From positions 496,001-560,000 of the forward strand of contig JALMLS010000322.1 of assembly GCA_038496445.1 (NCBI GenBank): DNA of 64,000 nucleotides, given 5' to 3'. Both the position numbers and the translations under genes were made by a program. The DNA is from Trichosphaerium sp. ATCC 40318 (taxonomy: Eukaryota; Protista; Tubulinea). Numbering within the stretch: the stretch's first letter is position 1; each line of letters opens with the position of its first letter. Below the pieces are notes generated by a model. The model saw only the letters and a program-made list of their open reading frames with translations. It was not told the DNA's origin and searched no databases. Of the stretch, positions 3,249 to 50,997 are shown in pieces.

Positions 3249-3831
3249 AGTATACAAGATTACAGACTTTGTCTATAGACACGTGTAACATTGGATTACT
3301 GCCTGCGCAAGTTTAGATACAGGGATGGGCGGTGAACTGTCTGAGTATATACACGTACTAACGTAGCAACTGAGAAAACTAGACAATACAACCAAAAGGA
3401 GATGACCAAGTAACTGGGAGGTTGTTAGATTTTATTGTAAACTCTTCCGTATCAAACCATGGTCAGCTAAGTTTTACACCAGTAAAATGTTGGTGATTTA
3501 ATGGCATTGAAAATATATCTTGCGCATCGAAACATTTCCACCATCCCAAGCCTTACATACCCAGTCAGAAATAAACAAGACATTTGAATAAAAACTTTGC
3601 GATTGCGCTTATGAGTATTTAACAAATTCCATCTTTGGATATCAAAAGAAACAACACGAAAATTTGTGTTAACCTTTTGGCTTCAAAACTCGTGACAGCT
3701 CTTTAAGTGTTTATTTTGTTACCATCCTATTTGTATTACCGGACCATGACAAAACTAAAACATTGTTGTGATTTTTATTCATATACAGTGATTGGTTACA
3801 TGTGTTACATGCGCGAATGGTGTTAGAAGAA

Positions 3832-6627
3832 TCACTTCTTGATCCACTGCATCGTAACTGTCAGTTCTCCGCTCTTTATCTAAATAGGTGTTAGTTATTT
3901 TGATCACAGCTGAGTAGTTTTAAGGTTTAGCAGACTTACTGGTTTTCTCTTTTTAGCACGTTTGTTTGGATCTGATAATTTGAATGTACACTCAACAGGT
4001 CCACCGGATTGTTTCAGTACAACATCACTAGACAATACTATTGATGCTTCTCCCATAAATATTCCTTTTCCAAATCTGTTCCAATCCCAGCAAACAATAG
4101 TTATTGTAGCATCAGATTTGCAAGGTCTGATAAAGTTAATACATAGTGTAATACAGAGAACCTTAATTACTAGTCTTCAACGTACATTTCAAGGTTTAAT
4201 TTATTCCATTTTGGGTTTAAGGTGCTCTTCTTATACTTGGTTTTGGTTTTGTCTCCTGGAATCACAACTTTGTTTTGTTCAAAAGTAATGTATGGATCAC
4301 TTGATCTCCCTATTCAACACGATTAATAAACTTGTACATCATACAGTAAATATAGATTTGGAGAAGAATCAATAGTGTTATCCTGTGATGTTGTTTTATT
4401 TGAAACCGAGAAGAAAAAAAGAAGAAAATCGTTTTGTTTTATGTTACTTACTATCACACACTATCAGATTTTTGCCGGTGATTTTTGTTATCTTTAATGT
4501 TCCTTCAGGTGCTTCTACTGTTGGTTTTGGTTTTGGAATTGATCCATATTTTACAACATCAGAAAGCTTGTCTGTTGCCTTTGTTTGTGTTAGTCACATA
4601 CTAATATTGTCGATGTTAGCGTACTGTAATACCATCGATTTTAATCAAGTCTTTAACATGCTTTGACAACAATGCCTTGTCATCGCAGTAGAACATGACT
4701 TTGTTCTTCCAAGACCATGTTCCTCGAATTTTTTTAATGAGATCCAATTTCTCCTCTATCTCATCTTCATCTTCATCGCTTTCTAATATCAAGTTAGATT
4801 ATATTAGGTAGGCATGTATAAGTTATTCTGACGAGAAAGTACAAAGTGACAAGGATGTGACAAAAATAAAAAAGATTTTAGGAAGAGTTGACATCTTCAA
4901 TTTTAAACAATACATTAAGAAAACAAACGTACCAATATTAACAAGAATGCGTATACTACTAAACAAATCACGTGTGAGAATAAAACGAGAAAATGCGAAA
5001 AGAAAAACAAACTGAAGTGATTACCTTTCTTGGTTTTTGATTGTTTTGTGCGTTTTTACTAGAACATCCTCGGCCCATTCTAGTGCTAATACCACAAAAT
5101 TAAATCAAACCAATTACATAAAAACCGAACTAACCATCAACGTCTTCTTCATCGTCTTCAAATACCACGTGATGTGCTACAACAACGCCATTATGCTGTA
5201 TTTCACGAATTGTGTTCTTAAGGGAAGTTAATCAAGAGACACGACACGTGACTTTAAAACGTACTCGAATCTTATCACCATATGAATCTCCAATCCACAA
5301 CAGAGTTGCAAAGCGGCAATACCTAATGCACGTGCTATTAATACCAACAAAACAAACATGTTAAAAGATCTTACTTGTTCATGTGCTTCTCCACTGATGT
5401 TGCACATGTATTTGGGTGACAGGAGATGTTCTCATTGCTTGCCAAACATTTTCTTACTGTGTCAGCTTTGGTTTTTGAAGTGTAAACCATCACCGGCACC
5501 TAAACGTTGTCAATATCCCATTTGAGTGGTATTTAAGGTACCTGTATATCTTGTGCTAGCAACTGTTGTATAAGGGTCTCGTAAGTATCTTTACCATCTT
5601 CTCCATGGCTTGCGTTGCAGATAAGTCGCTAACAATCTATGTTAACAAGATCACAGTCAGAACATCGTTCCTCATTACGTACCCAACGCCACGAAGCGCA
5701 TTTGTCAGTAGAAAGATCGCGGTTAGCGAGCATATCGGTGAACACCTTCAAAAAAATTAGGTAAAAACAAAAACTACAATCGCACTTCTTGGCAACTTTT
5801 ACGTTGAATAAAAAGCAGGTTTTTATTCTCGTTTGACGCGGCTTTGATAAAAACATCTGAAACGGCACGTGTTAGTGAACAGTTGGCAAAAATCAAATAT
5901 CTGCTAAAACATCATACTATTATTTTCTGGGTGAGAATCTAACCACGTGATCATTCTAAAAACGATTTGGTTAACTACAACAAAAAAATAAAAGTCTAGT
6001 TTGTGTACTGCAGGTTCTCGTCTTCTTTCATCATTACCATTGCGCCAGTTTCTTTGTCCACTATATTAAACGTGTGAGGACGTAATTACCAATGATTCAA
6101 AGTGTACAAAGCAGATTTTGAACTTCATCATTGGACAATAAAGTTGTCACTAACTGAGATAAGCACAACGCATTTAGGTCGACAACTGCATCAGACAGTC
6201 TTCTTTCAATGTCCTAAGCTGTTATTAGTAGTAACTAGCCTTAAACACAAGTACCATAAAGTCATCTTTAGCAGACTGAAAAGAGCAAACCTCTCCAAAT
6301 GTTGTCTTGTTCTCGAATTTTTCGACATACTTTTGAGCCTCCTCACTAACTTCAAGGAGTCTTTTCAAACAAGCTGATGCGTTTTCTTCCTTCAACGCTT
6401 TTCTGTGATTGGGTTCTAGCCATAGTTAACACAAAAGGGCCAATAACAAAAGTGAAGGTCATTCTTCAAAACGTACGCTTTAAAACCTCATACAAAGCTT
6501 GTAATCTTTCAATGAGGCGACCACATAGCTTCCTGTTCCTCTTTATGCCTTGGTGTATATCTACTACTAGCTGAACAATACTAGCGATCCTCTCAACAAT
6601 TTCAATAGCGCCTAGAGCTGCCTCCAT
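3832..6627 (-). CDS. MLKL-like N-terminal four-helix bundle + two degenerate receiver-fold domains + C-terminal C2 domain
   Basis: About 14 phase-consistent exons. N-terminus: MEAALGAIEIVERIASIVQLVVDIHQGIKRNRKLCGRLIERLQAL...LLEVSEEAQKYVEKFENK...DFMDIERRLSDAVVDL. REC-like parts: ITWLDSHPENN..RLICN..PVMVYTS and LLWIGDS..IRILVNI..KVMFYCD. C2: GTLKITKITGKNLIVCD..SDPY..KSTLNPKWN..VCWDWNRFGKGIFMGE. Confidence 0.8.
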
Positions 6628-6959
6628 CAGTGTTGTGTGTTGTGAATGAAGTGAACGCAACGTAACCAATCATTGAATTAACGTAAAAACAACAAATCCG
6701 GCCCGTGTCCTCAAACCGGTTGTAATTCAATGAAATGAAAGAAAAAACAGACTCAACTTCAGATCTTGACATCTCCATTGACAGCAACAACTTCACTACC
6801 TGAACTGTTACGTTGAACAGCGACACCAAGTTCATGTCGGACACTGATAGCAATTCTCGTGCCGACAGCAAGCTCGGCTTCAATAAATCTTCTTCTACAA
6901 TTTTAAGTACGCTCTTGAGGTTAAGCCAATTGCATCGCATTCTGCCATCAACAAAAACC

Positions 6960-8452
6960 ATGGTTAACGGTATTTTGTGTTTAACTGCGTTTGTTTGCTT
7001 TGTTCAAATACTGACAGGTACTACATAAACTGCTATCTACAAAAGACTGTAATACTGTACAAGCTTTAAAATGCCCTTGCAATAATGAAGAGCTTTGTAA
7101 ACCACTGCTTATTGGTCCTCGACCTGAAAAATTCGTTTTTCAGACGACAAATACGACGTGGCGTCACTATGACTGGTCTATGGTAAGAAAACGAGTGGTT
7201 TTTGGCGTTTGCATACTTATTTATGAAGATTACGACGATTGTCGCTACAGAAAAGTATATTGATCCAAATCTCATCTGTTATGCCCATGAACGCAATGTA
7301 CGTATTATTGGTATTGCGGTGTACCCCACAGAACAATTATTGAACAAAACGCACGTGGACGAATGGGTTACTACAAAGTTTCAGTTTTTGAAAGATAATT
7401 TCTTGGACGGATTCAATTTGGATTTTGAGGATCCTATTGATGATAAGTCGCCTGAACAGGGAGCTCTTCTCTCTCTTGTTAAACACATAAGAAGTCTATT
7501 AGATACAGAAGTATCCACATACGCACAACTGACAATGGATGCGCCGTACGTCCGAAGAAATCAAAACGAAGCAAAAATATTAAACTGCCACTTTATGACC
7601 ATTTCTTAGGTTTGCCCCAGGTTGTACTTGGGGAAGATGCTATGGATGGAAAGCACTTTCTGATTACCTTGATTTCATATTTATAATGTACTACGACATG
7701 GGTGGAGAATCGGGACCTCAGTGGAATTGCAAAGCAGCACCAAATTCTCCGTATCCAACAGTTGTAAAGGGAATTAATGAATTTTTAGCAAAAGGCATAC
7801 CTGCGAACCAATTAGGTATTACTACTCAATTACAATACAAGTAGCGTAGCGATGAAAAAAAATTTTGGTTGCATTGTCTAAAAGGATAGAGCACCATACA
7901 GCGGTGATCAAACCTACTAGATAATAACTTCATTGACGAAATAACACATTTGTAGTTTTGGGTGCACCTTGGTATGGATATGATTATGGTTGTGATCCAT
8001 TAACTAACATAACTTCTTGTTCGATGTGTGATAGGTACCACGTGCCAAAATAGAAACATAATTGTTTTATTTAATTTTTTTTTTCAAGCAACGGAAAACA
8101 TAGACAAGTTGCAGTGACATACGCTCGAATAATGTCTCTTATTCCAACGTCAACAACTGGAGTAATTTACAATGACTATTTTAAGTCTGTATACTTTAAT
8201 TATAAGGCATCTGATGGAACAATGCATCAGGTACAAGGAAATGAAACAAAAAAAAAACCTATGCGCACTTGGTTCTAACCCTGGATTTTTTTGAAGGTTT
8301 GGTTTGATAATCCAAAAACTCTTTCTATAAAATATGAACTTGCAAAGAATATGGGAATGCGTGGTATAGGTATGTGGCAAGCCGATGATTTGGATTATAA
8401 CAACCAAGAACAAGTCTCTAGCGTGTGGAATAGTATGAAAGTTTTTTCCTAA
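6960..8452 (+). CDS. CTBS: Di-N-acetylchitobiase (GH18)
   Basis: Signal peptide, CPCNNEELCKP, WRHYDWS, LICYAHERNVR, catalytic DGFNLDFE, FIMYYD, VLGAPWYGYDY, GMRGIGMW. Confidence 0.88.
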
Positions 8453-10387: not shown

Positions 10388-11868
10388 ATGATGTCAGTAA
10401 ACAAACGAAACGCCATAGATCATAGGTACGTGCTGTATCGCTCTATATAGTATTCTAACAACCTTAAAGCGCACAAGTAAGCATATTAGACTTCCCAACA
10501 GAGATTTTAGCACTTATCTTGGTTAAAACAACTAAAGCACGGTTTGCAGCCTCTCAAACATGTCATCAATTTGCTTCCATCATTCATGATGTTATCGGAT
10601 ACTCGAGAGTCTGTATTTCGAGTGCCTCACAAGCAAAAGCAGTTTTACAGCATTCTAGTACACTACAACATACGGAAATCAAACTTTTAGGCAAATCGAC
10701 ATCTGATAATGTTGTCAAGGCATTTGCTGGCGTTCACTCCATTGATCTTTATCAATGCAATATAACTGATGAAGGGATTAAGTCACTCGCTGGTGTACAT
10801 ACAATTAATCTTGGGGAAACTGATGTTGCAGATGAAGGAATCAAGGCACTTTCGGGAGTGTACAATATTGATATCAGTTATACACGTGTAACAGATGAAG
10901 GGTTAAAAGCACTTTCTGGCGTTCACACTGTCAACCTTCGTTCAACTGACATAACAGATGAAAGCATCAAGGCACTTTCTGGAGTGTACAAGATTGATCT
11001 CAGTTATACACATGTAACAGACGAAGGGTTAAAGGCACTTTCTGGGGTTCATACAATTAGTCTTGTTATGTGTAATCATATAACAGACGAAGGGGTAAAA
11101 GCATTTTTTGGAGTGTATAGTATTAATCTTAGTTTTACATCAATAACCGATGAGGGGTTAAAAGCTCTTTCCAGTGCACATCAAATTAGCCTGCAAGAGT
11201 GCCACAACATTACAGATGAAGGTTTAAAAGCTCTTTCTGGAGTACATCAAATTTCTCTTAGAGCTTGTGGAAGAATAACTGATGAAGGGATCAAGTTGCT
11301 TGGTGGCGTACACACAATAAATCTTGAGGAAACTGACATAACAGATGAAAGCATCAAGGCACTTTCTGGAGTTCATACAATTAGTCTTGTTATGTGCATT
11401 AATATTACAGATGAAGGCATTGAGGCACTTTCTAGAGTGTATAATATTGATCTCAGTTATACATGTGTAACAGATGAAGGGTTAAAGGCACTTTCTGGAG
11501 TTCATACTATTAGTCTTGCGCATTGTGAATGTATAAGAGGTGAAGGGATCAAGGCACTTTCTGGAGTGTACAGTATTGATCTCAGTTATACACATGTAAC
11601 AGATGAAGCCATCAAGGCACTTTCTGGAGTTCATACAATTAGTCTTGTTACGTGCATTAATATTACAGATGAAGGAATCAAGGCACTTTCTGGAGTGTAC
11701 AATATTGATCTCAGTTATACATGTGTAACAGATGAAGGGATAAAAGCTCTTTCTGGTGTACATCAAATTAGCCTTTACAGATGTATGAGTTTAACAGAAG
11801 AAGGCATTAAATTACTTAAAGGATATGGCTTTAAAAAGATAACAGATGGAATGGAGTTTAGTAAATAA
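10388..11868 (+). CDS. F-box protein with many short (21-22 aa) LRRs
   Basis: A short first exon splices to SILDFPTEILALIL...RFAASQTCHQF (F-box). One long exon then carries the ITDEGLKALSGVHTISLxxC repeats. Confidence 0.88.
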
Positions 11869-28695: not shown

Positions 28696-29681
28696 ATGGT
28701 ACGTAAAATAGCTGTACATAAGCTACAGCTACTACAGCCGGAATATGTAACGAGAATAACAATTTTATATCCACACCAACCCTCAGTTTTGTTTGAGCAA
28801 CGACATCCCAGGTTTTTTAAAGTTTGATTTTTAGTGTAAAACAATCATTTGAACAAAGATAATTTTACCTTTCACCTTTCTCAAGTTAGTCAATCGCCAG
28901 TTATATCTCAGTTTACAACTACAAATTTGTTGCTCAATATATTGACAATAGTTTGAAGCTAAGAAAGTAACAATTGACTAATTTCTTAGAAACACAATAC
29001 AAACACATGTTTCTTACATTCTAACTTATGTTTGTTTAGACTCATCCCAAGCGTAAACAAAATTTGTGCCTTGAATTGGGTTCTTTGAGTTTATTGGATA
29101 TTCCATGTGAACTTCAAACGTATATTTGTACCTTCAATATTGAAGCATTCACAAAATTCCACAGTCTATCTAAGAGAGCTGCAACAAATACTCATTTTGA
29201 TGAAACGTTACAGAGAAAAGGGGTATGGATAAGATGGTATAAAAGTGGAATAGTACAGTCTCATCTATATACAGTGAATGGGCTGTATAAAGAATGGTAT
29301 GATAATGGAGCACTTAAAGAGCAGCACACATTAGTTAATGGTAAAAAAGAAGGTGAAAGTAAGTCATGGTACGATAATGGACAACTTGAGTGTCAGTCAA
29401 TGTGGGCTGATGATGAGCAACATGGTGAACGTAGATATTGGTATAAAAATGGGCATCTTGAAGGCCTGTCCATGTGGGTTGATGGTAAACAACATGGCGA
29501 AAGTAAAGGATGGTATGAGAATGGACAACTTGCATACCAAGGCACGTGGGTTGATGGTAAACAACATGGTGAACATAAAGATTGGTATAAGAATGGACAA
29601 CTTGAGTACCAATGCATGTGGGTTAATCATGAACAACACGGCGAAAGTAAAGGATGGTATGAAGATGGAACACTAAAGTAA
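28696..29681 (+). CDS. F-box-like + MORN-variant (MORN_2-type) repeat protein
   Basis: Probable ATG|GTACGT micro first exon (start uncertain); SLLDIPCELQTYI F-box-like motif; 24-aa repeats GKQHGESKGWYENGQL in one exon. Confidence 0.8.
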
Positions 29682-33481: not shown

Positions 33482-36400
33482 ATGAATCCTTGGCCACAAC
33501 GTCAACAACAACAGCAGTATGGGGTAAACCGTAACCAAGTACGCTACAGAAAGATCCTTGACAATTCGTTATTATTCTATAGTTTATACTTATGAGTACT
33601 TGTAGCAGGCAACTGGTAATTATGGGCAAAATTATAACGCTCCTCAGGGACAACAAAGAAACTTACAAGGACAGCCTCAAATTCAAAACATTTTGTCCTC
33701 TCTCACTCAAAAACCGCCTATTGGACAACAAACCCAACCGTCTCTTTTTCCAAATGCTCAAGCAAACTACAATCAAGGCGCTGGCGCTAACCAACAGGGC
33801 AACAGCATTACACCACAAGCTTTAGGTGGTTTATTAGAAGCTCTTCAGTCTGGTTTAAAACAAAACGCGCCAAGTAACCCACACGCGTCAATGAACCAAC
33901 AGCAAGTACGATTGCGTTTGTGTGATCTTTTTTTGACATTTGGCACCTAAGAAACTGTTTTCGCTTTTTTTCTAAAGGAGACTATCACTCGAGTCTATTG
34001 TTGTCTTACTTCATGTCAACGTATGTCAGACTAACTATTATTTTAAGTTTAATAACCAGCCTGTCCACGCACCATATCAACCTTCCAATGTACCTCCAGC
34101 ATCTGGGTATCAGGATAATAATCAACGACAAGGGTATGTTTGTATTTTTGGAACAAGAATATCCTTTTGCCACAAAAAAAAATAGAGAAAAAATAACAGG
34201 TTGTTAATTTTACTATAACAGAGGCCGCTTTAACAACAACCAACAACAGAATAATATGCAGCAACCTCAGCGTAATATGAGAGGTAATAATAATAACAAT
34301 CAAACAGGAGGATACGGACACAATAATCAACAACAGCAGGTATGAATAGTTTTTAGGTTCACGGTGTAATGAAATATTTATCCGGTTTAGTACAACGATC
34401 GCGGTATGAATCAACATGGAAACCGTGGTAGAAATATGGGCAACCGTGGTGGAAGTATGGGCGGTCAACATGGTGGACGCGGTGGACACGGAGGACGTGG
34501 TGGACATGGTGGACGCGGTGGGCATGGTGGTAACCAAAGTGGAAGAGGTGGTTTTGCCCCTCAGCGCCAAGGTTATTCTCACTCCAACAACAACTATAAC
34601 CGTCATGATAATAACGATCGTGGTGGTAGAGGAGGCCATCGTGGACGCGGACGAGGTGGACACAGCAATCGAGGAGGTAGACAAGGTAAAAAGCTTAAAA
34701 CTGTTGGGTAGTATTCTAATCTGTTGTTTAAGGTAATGACATGCCGTACAATAACCAGCAAGGTGCCAGAAGAGGGTACAGTGCGGATAATGCTGGACCA
34801 GGGCATAATACAGGAGGTAGAGGACCAAGACAAGGTTACTCTTCTGGAGGAAATAGACAGAACATGGCAAGGAACCAAGGTGGTAAAGATTGGCGTCAAG
34901 GTGGACCTAATCAAGGGAATCAAAGAGGAGGCTCTAACCAAGGCGGACAGCGTTCTGGAGGACGATTCAATCAAGGCAACAGGGACAATTTTGGTAAGTT
35001 GGTGAAGTGTTTATAAAGCTTACTTTTTGTAAGGCCAAGGACGTGACAATTATGGTGGCAGAGGTAGAAGCAACCGAGGCGGAAGAGATTCTGGCTTTGG
35101 TGGCGGTGGTGGATACAACTCAAACTACAACCGAGACTCTGGGTACCAAGGAAAACCAAAACGAGGTGGCATGGTACGGGAAAACAAGAGCTTTGTGTTT
35201 GTTATTTTATTACCTTTTATTTACTCTTATATTTTTTATACAGGGTAGAGATAGAAGACAAGATAGAGGCGGCGCTCGCTGGGATGATAGGAAAGATGAT
35301 TTTGGTAGAAACCGTGATCATACTAGGAGAGACAAGGACTTTGATAGAAATAACAACCGAGACCGTGATTTTAAGGATATTAAGTATGATCCTGGCCGAC
35401 CTAGTACTTCTGTTACCAGCGGTGATAGCGGTCCTAGAGAAAAACTTAAAAAATACAAATGGTACGTTACATACCTCTTTGATGCTTCTGACTATTTTTT
35501 TTCTCATTTTTTTCTTGTAGTGATGTGTTGAGTTACTCTATCACTGAACCAACCGTATGTTATTACACGTGTAAATCACGTTATCCAGACCTATACCTCA
35601 GCCCTGATTTTGTATCATACACACTCGACTGGATGAATACGTTACCAGTGTCTAGTCCATTGAAAGTAACTGAGCCAGTTAACTTTATTTGTGATAATGA
35701 GACTCGTGAGAAAGATGATCCGGAAGAAGAAAAGAGTAGTGGTTCACCTATACTATGGGTTGCAAAAGCGTTACTATTTTCTGGTTCACCATATGAAGAT
35801 GATGAGAGCGGAAAACAGATTGAAAAGAGACTCAAATTTCTTCTTCTAAAGAAGGATCGAAGTAATTTATTAGCTGTTGGTGGTCCTTACGATTCTGCCT
35901 TGGATGGTGTTGGTGACCCTGCAACTAATGATAGCTTGCTTATTAACACTGTCATGTACGTCACTAATATAGTTGTAGCTGTTGTTTACCTACATTTGAA
36001 TTTAGTCGTGCAACCAAAGATAAACTTCATTTGGATTTAAGCACTTGCACAAGCTGGTATCGGTTTTTGACTGTAAAGTACCACAGAGATGATGGAACGA
36101 TTCAAAACACTGTAATATTTTTACCTTCGGTTAAAGATATTATGCCTAGCCGTGAAGAGGTAATAACAACGAGTTGCTAGCAACAATAGAAATTTGCCTT
36201 TGCGGCTTTTTTTTTTTGGATTTTCTTTTGGACAGCTTTTGTATTGGCGTTACGTAGTTCTAATACTTATAGTTTCTTGAATCTTGGAAAGATAGGGAGC
36301 GTATTAAAAAGAGGAAGCAATTAGAAATGGAGGAACTAGCACGTATTGAAAGAGAAACAGCTGCTAAGAAGCGTGCAGAGGCTTTACAGAAGCAAGAACA

Positions 36401-37761
36401 AGAGAAAAAACAAAGTGAAGCTCCTGAGGAGGGTATCACTACACCTCCTGCTCCACCAACTGAAGAAGAACTTGCAGCCAAGGCAGCTGAAGAAGCAAAA
36501 AAAGCTGAAGAAGCAAAGAAAGCCGAGGAAGAAGCAAAAGCTGCAGAAGCAAAACCTGAAGCGACACCTAAGCTTGAGATTACTGTACCTGAGCCAGATG
36601 TTTCTTTAGCGCCAAAGGAACAAGCTATTTTTGCTACTACTAAGAGAGTTAAGTATCAGAATATCAAGTCAACGGTGATTTCATTAGATGGTTTACTTGG
36701 TATGTTTTTTGAAAAAGCCAAAAAAAATATCTTTGTGCTTTTTTTTGGGATTCTTTTCGCTAATTTTATTATAGATTATGACGAAACTGATACTTGGGAA
36801 CCTACACTAGAGGCACATAACTTTTCTTTTTTTTCACAGATTTTTTTGTTGAGTGAGGCTGACGTCTGATTTTTTTTCTAGATTTCTTTGTTCGCTGAGA
36901 ATTTCAGAGAAATGATTTACCGTGATTTCGGTGCAGTCATTCTACAATTCTTAAGGGATCGTATGGCTATTAATAAAGCGACTTCAAAGAAGAGAAAGAG
37001 AGAAGCAGAAGAAGGAGATGAACCAGCAGCAAAGAAGCAAAAACCGGAACCAACAGCGGACGTTGTAAAAAAAGAAGAAGAAGTAAAAAAAGAGGTACGC
37101 TTTAAAAATCGTTATTATTCAGGTGTTGTACGCCACTCAAGTATAAACAAAAACCAACAAACATCAGTACATAAAAACCTTGATATTATATTTCTAAGTT
37201 GCAAATAATTTAATCAACCATTATACATGCTCTATGAAGTAGTTCTTTGGCGTTTTGTTCAAAACCAAACCAAAAATTCAAAAAAACTTTTTTCATTCAA
37301 AAAACAAATTACCCATTACCGCTCCACAATCCGACGTAAAATTTCAGGAAGAAGTCCAAAAAGGTTCTTTAGAACCTATGAATATCGTTCAAGAGGAAGT
37401 AAATCAAAAAGAAGGGTCTGAGGGTACAGCGGAAATGTCGCTTGAGAAAGCCCAAAATACTGATTTAAAGGATACTCAATCTACTTTGTCAGATGAAGAG
37501 AAATTTAGTATTCTACGCGCTTTCCGTTACTTTGATTGGAACCAAATAGGATACATAAAAGACGTGGATCTAGAGGCTATTTTGCATAGTTTAGGGTTGG
37601 GTCTAACGAAGAAACAGGCAACAGATTTGGTCGAATCTTCCACATCTAATAATAGGCGTGTGAATTATGTTGAATTGGTTTCAGCTTCTTCTCCTACTAC
37701 TCCTACTGCTTCCACTGCTGCTTCTGCTTCTACAGCTGAAAAACCAACCACATCCACTTGA
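33482..37761 (+). CDS. CCAR1: CCAR1/DBC1-family protein with long RGG/NQG-rich N-terminus
   Basis: RYPDLYLSPDF, LKFLLLKK..AVGGPYDSALDG, LDLSTCTSWYRF, ISLDGLLDYDE..EISLFAENFREMIYRDFG, EF-hand-like AFRYFD..GYIKDVDLEAILHSLGL. Confidence 0.82.
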
Positions 37762-49181: not shown

Positions 49182-49695
49182 ACTTGCCACGTTATGTTGA
49201 GATTTGTTGACTGCCAACAAAGCCAGTTCCTATGTCTAAGTTCCTATTTTTACTTCCAGTATTCTTGTCACCACCAGGCAGTAACGCGCGTGTACAAATA
49301 GAACTGTATGATCAGCAGGCTGTCATAATCTTCTTTAAGGAGAAATAGATTCTAAAGTATTTCTCTTCTCATTGTTTGTGCTACCCGTCATCTATAAAAG
49401 GCTATTGAATTGTTTTTTATGCTAAGAAAACTCACGAATACTTTTAGCTACCCAGCCAACATGGTTAAATGACGGAACATACTCGCCTTAACATTCAAAG
49501 GTTTATGAAATACGACTTGCCACAAACAGTGTTAAAGGCGAGGGGAGATAGCAAAGGTAAACAAAATTGTCCATTGTACGTCACTAAGAGTGATAACTGA
49601 GCGAATTTGATTTCTAGTTTTCAATCAAATTGCTTTTCAATCAAGTCAAAATTATTCATTATTTTATCATTACACAGCCATCAACACACCTCATC

Positions 49696-50997
49696 ATGAG
49701 CCTTACCAGAAATAACAAACGTACTTTAACCGACTTATCAAACATCAAAGCCGCACATTACGATATTCCTCCTGAAATATGGAGTCTCATATTATCACTC
49801 TTAAATGACGACAAAGATCGATGTACCATTGCTTCAACTTGTTTAAAGTTCTATTTCCTTATCCATGACAATATCGGCTACAACAAAATCTATGTCAACC
49901 AAGAAAACATAGAAATGATATCTGAAAGCGAAGGTATACTAAACAATACCCTTGTTGTCGTTGCTTGCCCTTGCTATAAAAGAAACTCCAGTGCCGAATG
50001 TACATGTGACGATAGGAGTTTTTACTTTGACTATGCTTCCATTATAGAGGATATTTCAGAAGCAAGACATGTTGACATTTCACCTTGTAGCTATTTGCTT
50101 TCTGAGGAAGACATTGAACATTTTAGCAACGTTCATACTCTAAACCTCTCAGGTTATATTCCAATAACAAGCAAATTCACCAAGTGCCTAGCTGGTATTC
50201 ATTCAATTGACTTGAGTGACACTTGTGAAGTAACAGATGAAGCTATTTGTACTCTCGCTGGAGTTCACACTATCAACTTATCAAACTGTATTGGTGTTAC
50301 AGATGTAAGTCTAAAAGCACTCAAAGGTGTTCATGAAATACACCTTGATAACAATCTTGATATCACGGATGAAGGTATCAAAGCGCTTGCAGGAGTACAT
50401 ACAATATATCTAGCTCACTGTCCAAACATCACAAATGAAGGCGTCAAAGCTCTTGCTGGAGTTCACACCATTTCCTTGCGATATGGATGTAGAAGAATAA
50501 CTGATGATGGATTGAAACATTTAGCAGGTGTTCACTCTATTGACATAAGCCACATGGAAGCAAGTTATCATTGTGGATCGAGGGGAATAACGGCAGAAAG
50601 TCTAAGTGCACTACAAGGCGTACATACACTCAACATTGCAAGAAATGAAGGTATCAGACCTTCGGATATAAAAAATCTTACAGGTGTCTATGCAATCAAT
50701 TTAGAGTGTAATCTCTACATGCCATCCTACGCAATTAGCATGGATGTTTTGAAAAGTGTCAGAGTTCTAAGTCACGGTACACCAGGATATGATGATGTAC
50801 TCAGTGAGAACTACTTGTTGCCTATTGAAGGACTTTATGACAATACAGTTGAAGTTGCAAGAAACTGGATACAAGTTGTAGATGGAAAGTGGTTTGATAC
50901 TGGATCAATGTCTCACCCGAATCTCAAACAAGTCAATTGGAAGATCATGCAACCTTTTGATAATTCTACAGACCAAAACGGTATATTTCATATGTAA
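49696..50997 (+). CDS. Intronless F-box + short LRR protein
   Basis: YDIPPEIWSLILSLL..RCTIASTCLKF F-box; ITDEGIKALAGVHTIYLAHC repeats as in the gene at 10388. Confidence 0.88.
   Translation: MSLTRNNKRTLTDLSNIKAAHYDIPPEIWSLILSLLNDDKDRCTIASTCLKFYFLIHDNIGYNKIYVNQENIEMISESEGILNNTLVVVACPCYKRNSSAECTCDDRSFYFDYASIIEDISEARHVDISPCSYLLSEEDIEHFSNVHTLNLSGYIPITSKFTKCLAGIHSIDLSDTCEVTDEAICTLAGVHTINLSNCIGVTDVSLKALKGVHEIHLDNNLDITDEGIKALAGVHTIYLAHCPNITNEGVKALAGVHTISLRYGCRRITDDGLKHLAGVHSIDISHMEASYHCGSRGITAESLSALQGVHTLNIARNEGIRPSDIKNLTGVYAINLECNLYMPSYAISMDVLKSVRVLSHGTPGYDDVLSENYLLPIEGLYDNTVEVARNWIQVVDGKWFDTGSMSHPNLKQVNWKIMQPFDNSTDQNGIFHM

Follow-up and report, generated by a model that had tools for sequence, protein, structure and literature searches.

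A protist gene joining an MLKL_N-type bundle, a middle region with a candidate receiver-like unit and a C2 domain: a candidate membrane-damaging effector

Could an amoeboid protist encode a membrane-damaging protein of the MLKL kind that is controlled by something other than a kinase-like domain? This question is raised by a locus on the minus strand (3832-6627) of a 64,000-nucleotide stretch of the Trichosphaerium sp. ATCC 40318 genome (assembly GCA_038496445.1, contig JALMLS010000322.1, positions 496,001 to 560,000), which is referred to below as the window. An earlier reading of the DNA letters (the original prediction) had described this locus as a spliced gene for a lytic cell-death effector made up of an MLKL-like bundle, two pseudo-receiver domains and a C2 domain. 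One transcript from the locus encodes an MLKL_N-type bundle followed by a middle region and a C2 domain, without a kinase or pseudokinase. The analogy to known systems suggests that the product may be a membrane-damaging effector of the MLKL/HeLo kind that is latent at rest, a reading that is given here a probability of about 0.45.

Two public runs, designated X1 and X2, contain parts of the stretch. Run X2 was aligned to positions 3600-7100 of the window, and a single contig of 1783 nucleotides (nt) from this run matched 3778..6647 (-) at 100% identity in 18 pieces. The pieces are separated by 17 introns, each of which reads CT..AC on the plus strand, that is GT..AG on the coding strand. Fifteen splice joints were read directly, while those at 6290/6214 and 6107/6061 were placed using the record positions and the length sum (1763 nt of spliced transcript and 20 further nt give the 1783 nt of the contig). 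These 20 unaligned letters lie past position 6647 and match, in reverse complement, the 3'-terminal letters of the SMART template-switch oligonucleotide. The presence of this adapter at the contig end indicates that X2 is complementary DNA (cDNA) and that 6647 is the cap site or close to it. The first ATG (6627-6625) opens a frame of 562 codons that is closed by a TGA stop (3834-3832). The transcript is organized as follows:

3832..6627, minus strand: coding sequence, 562 amino acids (aa), ~64 kDa, frame in contig X2
6647-6477, 6415-6291, 6213-6108, 6060-6009, 5955-5918, 5856-5786, minus strand: exons 1-6 (contig X2)
5745-5683, 5628-5542, 5499-5375, 5322-5265, 5216-5135, 5085-5025, minus strand: exons 7-12 (contig X2)
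4958-4933, 4782-4625, 4578-4452, 4309-4186, 4126-3940, 3879-3778, minus strand: exons 13-18 (contig X2)

Because all 18 exons lie on one cDNA contig and form a frame of 562 codons without interruption, the locus is one expressed gene. It encodes a soluble cytosolic protein; no membrane span is predicted in the 562-aa product. The original prediction had joined the locus into one continuous spliced frame, to be checked against cDNA and abandoned if the transcripts fell into separate genes. Contig X2 shows a single transcript with 18 exons, and its frame runs from 6627 to 3832, exactly the limits proposed. The peptides on which the domain assignments had been based are nearly all present in the cDNA-encoded protein, including those quoted for the bundle (CGRLIERLQAL, EEAQKYVEKFENK and DIERRLSDAVVDL) and those quoted for the middle region (ITWLDSHPENN, RLICN, PVMVYTS, LLWIGDS, RILVNI and VMFYCD).

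The introns of this gene are 40-150 nt long. Ten of the 17 donors start with GTAC and six of these with GTACGT, which is an unusual 5' splice-site preference. Run X1, which according to its record derives from a different organism, contains shorter spliced contigs that are 90-99% identical to the gene and have five splice joints in common with X2. The X1 contigs span 3940-6632. They differ from the window at 1 of 260 nt in exons 1-2, and over exons 9 and 17 they are 90-95% identical to it, with 9 synonymous and 14 non-synonymous changes; this ratio is uninformative about selection because the X1 contigs may be paralogues. One of them is unspliced across intron 10 (5217-5264).

The encoded protein can be divided into the following parts:

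6108..6627, minus strand: putative MLKL_N-type helical bundle, aa 1-127, exons 1-3 (Pfam PF22215, phmmer and profile alignment)
6009..6060, minus strand: acidic linker (isoelectric point [pI] 4.2), aa 128-145, at the position of the MLKL brace, to which it is assigned by position only
5389..5955, minus strand: unit A, candidate degenerate receiver (REC)-like domain, aa 146-268 (local REC hidden Markov model [HMM] and hhalign)
4537..5322, minus strand: unit B, acidic domain with two acidic runs, aa 273-415 (position and composition)
3835..4509, minus strand: C2 domain, aa ~425-562 (Pfam PF00168 and PDB matches)

The N-terminal region is very probably homologous to MLKL_N, judging from profile comparisons of its first two exons. 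Exon 1 matches Pfam MLKL_N (PF22215) over profile positions 1-39 (15.4 bits, E-value: 0.013). Exon 2, in the form found in the cDNA, matches positions 49-80 (19.7 bits; E-values of 6e-4 to 1e-4 across the short and long forms of the exon described below). The two matches are colinear, and their scores, obtained exon by exon, add up to roughly 35-37 bits, compared with a cut-off of 27. A phmmer search with the 50 aa of exon 1 against 1.84 billion representatives returned two matches only, P0001 (E-value: 1.5e-6) and P0002 (E-value: 7.2e-5), both of which exceed the MLKL_N cut-off themselves (44.6 and 27.2 bits, respectively). P0001 is RHZ84305.1 of Diversispora epigaea, while P0002 clusters with a protein of Rhizophagus irregularis; both are from Glomeromycota and contain three tandem MLKL_N units. 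The match between exon 1 and these fungal relatives includes the MLKL_N motif N-K-x-C-G-x-L-x-x-R. When six fungal units and the window exons were combined into a profile, this aligned to residues 11-122 of mouse MLKL (4BTF), which is the whole bundle, in second rank and with an E-value of 0.07. HeLo and PigL_N clusters are among the language-model neighbours of exon 1, which can be used as a lead only. The likeness to the MLKL bundle in the original prediction had been drawn by lining up peptides with human MLKL. It stands above chance in the PF22215 comparison and in the phmmer search with exon 1. A pairwise match to solved MLKL is undetectable exon by exon, and the likeness to it is seen by profiles only.

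The cDNA departs from the original prediction at one splice junction within the bundle. A donor at 6254, giving the junction FM/DIERR, had been proposed there; in the cDNA, ...TTFGE is joined to DIERR from a donor at 6290 (GAG/GTTTGC), so that 12 residues are dropped. The segment in question is as follows:

6255..6290, minus strand: 36-nt segment (12 aa), in-frame and stop-free; spliced out in the cDNA, kept in the originally predicted model

Retaining these 36 nt raises the MLKL_N score of exon 2 from 19.7 to 22.1 bits and extends its coverage of the profile from 49-80 to 49-94. Only the long form matches a whole unit of P0001 (8-117 against 255-369). The downstream donor (GTACTT) is also closer to the other donors of the gene than is the donor that is used (GTTTGC). 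The donors at 6290 and 6254 may be used alternatively, giving rise to short and long isoforms of the bundle. The short form is the only isoform seen, in assembled contigs that cannot reveal minor ones.

The C2 domain is the best-supported module of the protein. Exon 16 matches Pfam C2 (PF00168) with 22.8 bits (cut-off 22) over profile positions 21-52, and exon 17 follows colinearly with 20.4 bits over positions 62-92. All PDB matches of exons 16-17 are C2 domains; the best solved relatives are those of PKC-alpha, synaptotagmin-1 and DOC2, with PKC-alpha among the top matches for both exons. When aligned to PKC-alpha, the domain retains the Asp of SDPY in loop 1 and the first Asp of loop 3 (WDW). 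The second loop-3 Asp is replaced by Asn (WDWN), and Ile stands in place of the Asp of RNDFMG. At the first Asp position of loop 1, the D of VCD in exon 15 was assigned by eye. With this residue, three of the five Ca-ligand Asp are kept, compared with all five in a Ca2+-dependent C2 domain, and the count of three agrees with the original prediction. The domain likewise retains the K-T-K of the lysine-rich cluster; both the Ca-ligand and the lysine-cluster assignments follow the roles of these residues in PKC-alpha. The C2 domain is strongly basic (pI 9.8; 27 K+R compared with 13 D+E) while all other modules are acidic, and a KRAKKRKP insert precedes its last strand.

The middle region gave no match in Pfam (E-values up to 10) or by phmmer against PDB when its exons were searched one by one. 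The original prediction had placed two REC-like units here, each with Asn in place of the phospho-acceptor Asp, and REC was accordingly the single, pre-chosen family with which the units were compared, using an HMM and alignment built locally from 21 receiver domains of E. coli K-12. Unit A, tested as aa 141-275, scores 9.2 bits with this HMM, a score that was reached by none of 2000 shuffled sequences (maximum 5.7). The bundle and the C2 domain, which served as negative controls, score 0.8 and -2.1 bits, respectively. In hhalign, the segment HGEDG...VPVMVYTS...CLASN falls on REC columns 59-98 (40 columns; P = 6.5e-5, probability 64%), and at a lower alignment threshold the match extends over 101 columns (REC 6-116; P = 1.4e-4). 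In this register, the acidic pair corresponds to D151-S152, the phospho-acceptor Asp to Asn207 (5614-5616), the conserved Thr to T238 and Lys-Pro to H259-P260. Of the canonical REC residues, the Thr is therefore kept and the others are changed (DD to DS, D to N and KP to HP). The first of the two proposed units is thus aligned in the register originally suggested, with modest support (P ~1e-4). Unit A can be classed, with modest confidence, as a degenerate receiver and is a pseudo-receiver at best; because Asn stands at the acceptor column, it cannot accept a phosphoryl group. Ranking E. coli ORFs (open reading frames) by phmmer was tried as a control for REC specificity and rejected, as many of these ORFs are spurious frames.

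The REC likeness of the second proposed unit was not supported. Unit B scores 5.2 bits with the REC HMM, a value reached by 9 of 2000 shuffled sequences, and its strands are matched out of the order proposed. By hhalign its similarity to REC is not significant (P = 0.04-0.09), and appending unit B to unit A worsens the REC match of the latter (P = 0.0055 compared with 1.4e-4). An internal duplication giving rise to units A and B was considered and rejected because the similarity between them is not significant (hhalign P = 0.39; a Smith-Waterman score reached by 182 of 1000 shuffled sequences). The best alignment of the two units is colinear in the register originally proposed despite this P value. 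Matches of exon 14 in the Atlas were limited to HAD-like phage fragments and were judged uninformative.

No kinase-like region was found in the 562-aa product, and no paralogue of the gene was found within the window by tblastn. Searches of metagenome contigs with exons 14 and 1, and of viral contigs with exons 17 and 1, found no close relatives. These absent matches say little about the range of the family because the proteins of the source genome are themselves missing from the protein collections. In the literature, no account was found in which MLKL_N is combined with a receiver or with C2, and none of MLKL-type proteins from amoebae.

Several known systems can be compared with this architecture. 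Vertebrate MLKL has an N-terminal PF22215 bundle with a basic patch, followed by a linker and then by a catalytically dead regulatory domain from a family of signalling enzymes, an arrangement that the window protein probably shares, and it too is cytosolic and without a membrane span. The window protein differs from it in having no pseudokinase, and hence no activation of the RIPK3 type. Its regulatory region instead consists of the receiver-like domain and unit B, a C2 domain is added at the C-terminus, and 12 residues between helices 3 and 4 are missing from the expressed isoform. The closest relatives of exon 1 are the MLKL_N-repeat proteins of Glomeromycota (P0001, and P0003, which is CAB4437018.1 of Rhizophagus), with 24-29% identity over the matched stretches. 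They have in common with exon 1 the motif around N-K-x-C-G; unlike the window protein, they contain three tandem MLKL_N units and none has a C2 or receiver-like domain. P0003 appears to have a kinase-like C-terminus, by eye only.

Plant MLKLs and the fungal HeLo/HELL proteins (HET-S, HELLP) resemble the window protein, as it is interpreted here, in having an N-terminal helical executioner bundle within a modular, auto-inhibited protein, there with a role in immunity or allorecognition, and a HeLo cluster is among the Atlas neighbours of exon 1. The regulator is a pseudokinase in the plant proteins and a prion-forming or amyloid motif in the fungal ones. No plant MLKL or HeLo/HELL protein was found reported with a C2 or REC domain in the papers searched. 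A pore-forming module that relies on a C-terminal C2 domain for docking is found in perforin, which follows the same design principle. The MACPF beta-barrel module with which perforin kills is unrelated, however, and perforin is secreted rather than cytosolic and has a C2 domain that is fully Ca-dependent. Plant PRR/APRR pseudo-receivers offer a parallel to unit A, as they have a CheY-like fold and a sequence pattern in which the phospho-acceptor Asp is replaced, and serve as interaction or regulatory modules. The replacement is Glu in the plant proteins and Asn in unit A. Unit A has also lost the conserved Lys and, within the acidic pair, the second Asp, and unlike the plant domains it is fused to a death-type bundle.

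Passages in three reports (10.1101/681015, PMC7705454 and PMC12881547) describe the bundles of MLKL, plant MLKL and fungal HeLo/HELL proteins as permeabilizing membranes. By analogy with MLKL and with perforin, the mode of action of the window protein may be pictured in the following way. The bundle would be the active, membrane-damaging part. At rest, the linker and the middle domains, which stand in the places of the MLKL brace and pseudokinase, would keep it from acting. A signal acting on the pseudo-receiver region, such as a binding partner, a ligand or a modification, would then release the bundle. His-Asp phosphotransfer to N207 is excluded as this trigger because Asn stands at the acceptor column. 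The C2 domain would dock the protein on acidic phospholipids, with weakened or no Ca2+ dependence and perhaps with help from a rise in Ca2+, after which the bundle would insert into the docked membrane and permeabilize it. The target could be a membrane of the cell itself, in a response that serves death or defence, or else the membrane of a phagosome or of a compartment containing a pathogen. Each functional step of this picture (lytic effector, auto-inhibition by the pseudo-receiver and targeting by C2) is inferred and draws on the analogy with MLKL.

A number of observations weigh against a membrane-damaging effector. Exons 1 and 2 each fall below the MLKL_N cut-off of 27 bits when taken alone, and exon 3 alone has no Pfam match. 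Twelve residues that fall within the MLKL_N profile are absent from the sole isoform seen, which might be a weakened or regulatory form. REC support for unit A is modest and comes from one chosen family, so that other alpha/beta folds are possible, and unit B is unexplained, with no Pfam or PDB match for any of its exons. No relative with this layout was found outside the source genome and run X1, and no function is known for the MLKL_N-repeat proteins of Glomeromycota. In addition, MLKL itself has non-lethal roles in endosomal trafficking, according to passages in PMC8816944.

The most probable of the alternatives, although it is itself somewhat unlikely, is that the protein is a non-lethal membrane adaptor. 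Its C2 domain would recruit it to membranes marked by Ca2+ or phosphatidylinositol phosphates, where the bundle and the middle region would serve trafficking, membrane repair or signalling. Copines, synaptotagmins and ferlins are C2 proteins with non-lethal membrane roles of this sort. Such an adaptor would fit the C2 domain being the best-supported module, the absence of part of the MLKL_N profile from the expressed isoform, and expression of the gene in an ordinary cDNA library, where nothing points to induction, as well as the trafficking functions of MLKL. It fits less well with the fact that MLKL_N/HeLo-type bundles are known mainly as executioner modules.

An improbable alternative is that the MLKL_N match is a false positive produced by generic amphipathic helices, in which case the protein would be a C2 signalling protein with novel helical and alpha/beta domains. 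The low scores of the single exons would be expected on this explanation. When exons 1 and 2 were searched singly against PDB with phmmer, coiled coils were found and no solved MLKL, and Atx10homo_assoc, another helical family, scores about as well as MLKL_N on exon 2. The profile match to mouse MLKL is in second rank at an E-value of 0.07. That same alignment covers the whole bundle, however, and two independent exons match the same family in the correct order and at the correct profile positions. The search with exon 1 among the 1.84e9 representatives returned MLKL_N proteins only (E-values of 1.5e-6 and 7e-5), and the N-K-x-C-G-x-L-x-x-R motif lies within the match. Finally, the short exons and the absence of any long ORF in the genomic DNA between 3000 and 7500 might suggest two or more genes or a non-functional pseudogene, with a long frame that arose only through the modelling. 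This can be dismissed for practical purposes in view of the single 18-exon cDNA contig, which contains the 562-codon frame and has its capped-end adapter 20 nt before the ATG, and of the five identical joints in the spliced X1 contigs.

The reading as a latent membrane-damaging effector can be extended to the protein being a member of a lineage-specific executioner family, in which a pseudo-receiver drawn from His-Asp signalling replaces the pseudokinase trigger and a C2 domain gates killing by Ca2+ or lipid. This extension is speculative and, at present, rather doubtful. Animals, plants and fungi all use MLKL/HeLo-type bundles to execute regulated necrosis, and each lineage has its own switch. 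A receiver-derived switch together with a C2 anchor in a protist would add another wiring to these and, if the extension holds, would point to an independent invention of regulated lytic death or of phagosome attack in an amoeboid protist. It would also inform the question of whether amoeboid cells have regulated lytic death or phagosome-directed killing. The protein would also offer a simple, RIPK3-free model, with domains that can be expressed separately, for studying how a bundle is restrained and how it is aimed at a membrane.

The window contains several other putative genes, while Rfam and tRNA scans gave no matches. A divergently oriented neighbour lies at 6988-7609 (+), with a start ~350-550 nt upstream of the cap site of the gene described above, and an X1 contig covers 6988-7100. 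Within it, the ORF at 7202-7609 (+) has a DGFNLDFED motif that recalls glycoside hydrolase family 18 and gave no Pfam match at an E-value of 0.001. A single-exon ORF at 10519-11868 (+) encodes 449 aa that consist almost entirely of LRR_6 repeats (161 bits), and a 205-aa ORF at 29064-29681 (+) consists of MORN_2 repeats (89 bits). The ORFs at 35525-36869 (+) and 37255-37761 (+) show a DBC1 match (33 bits), along with weak matches to LAIKA (22.8 bits, cut-off 27) and to an EF-hand pair (23.8 bits, cut-off 30); both ORFs may belong, as exons, to a single gene with a sensor domain of the NAD/ADP-ribose type. An ORF of 455 aa at 49630-50997 (+) encodes an F-box-like domain and leucine-rich repeats. 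It gave no self match, and its best relatives, found in MMETSP, in ENA and among oomycete proteins, are 34-43% identical.

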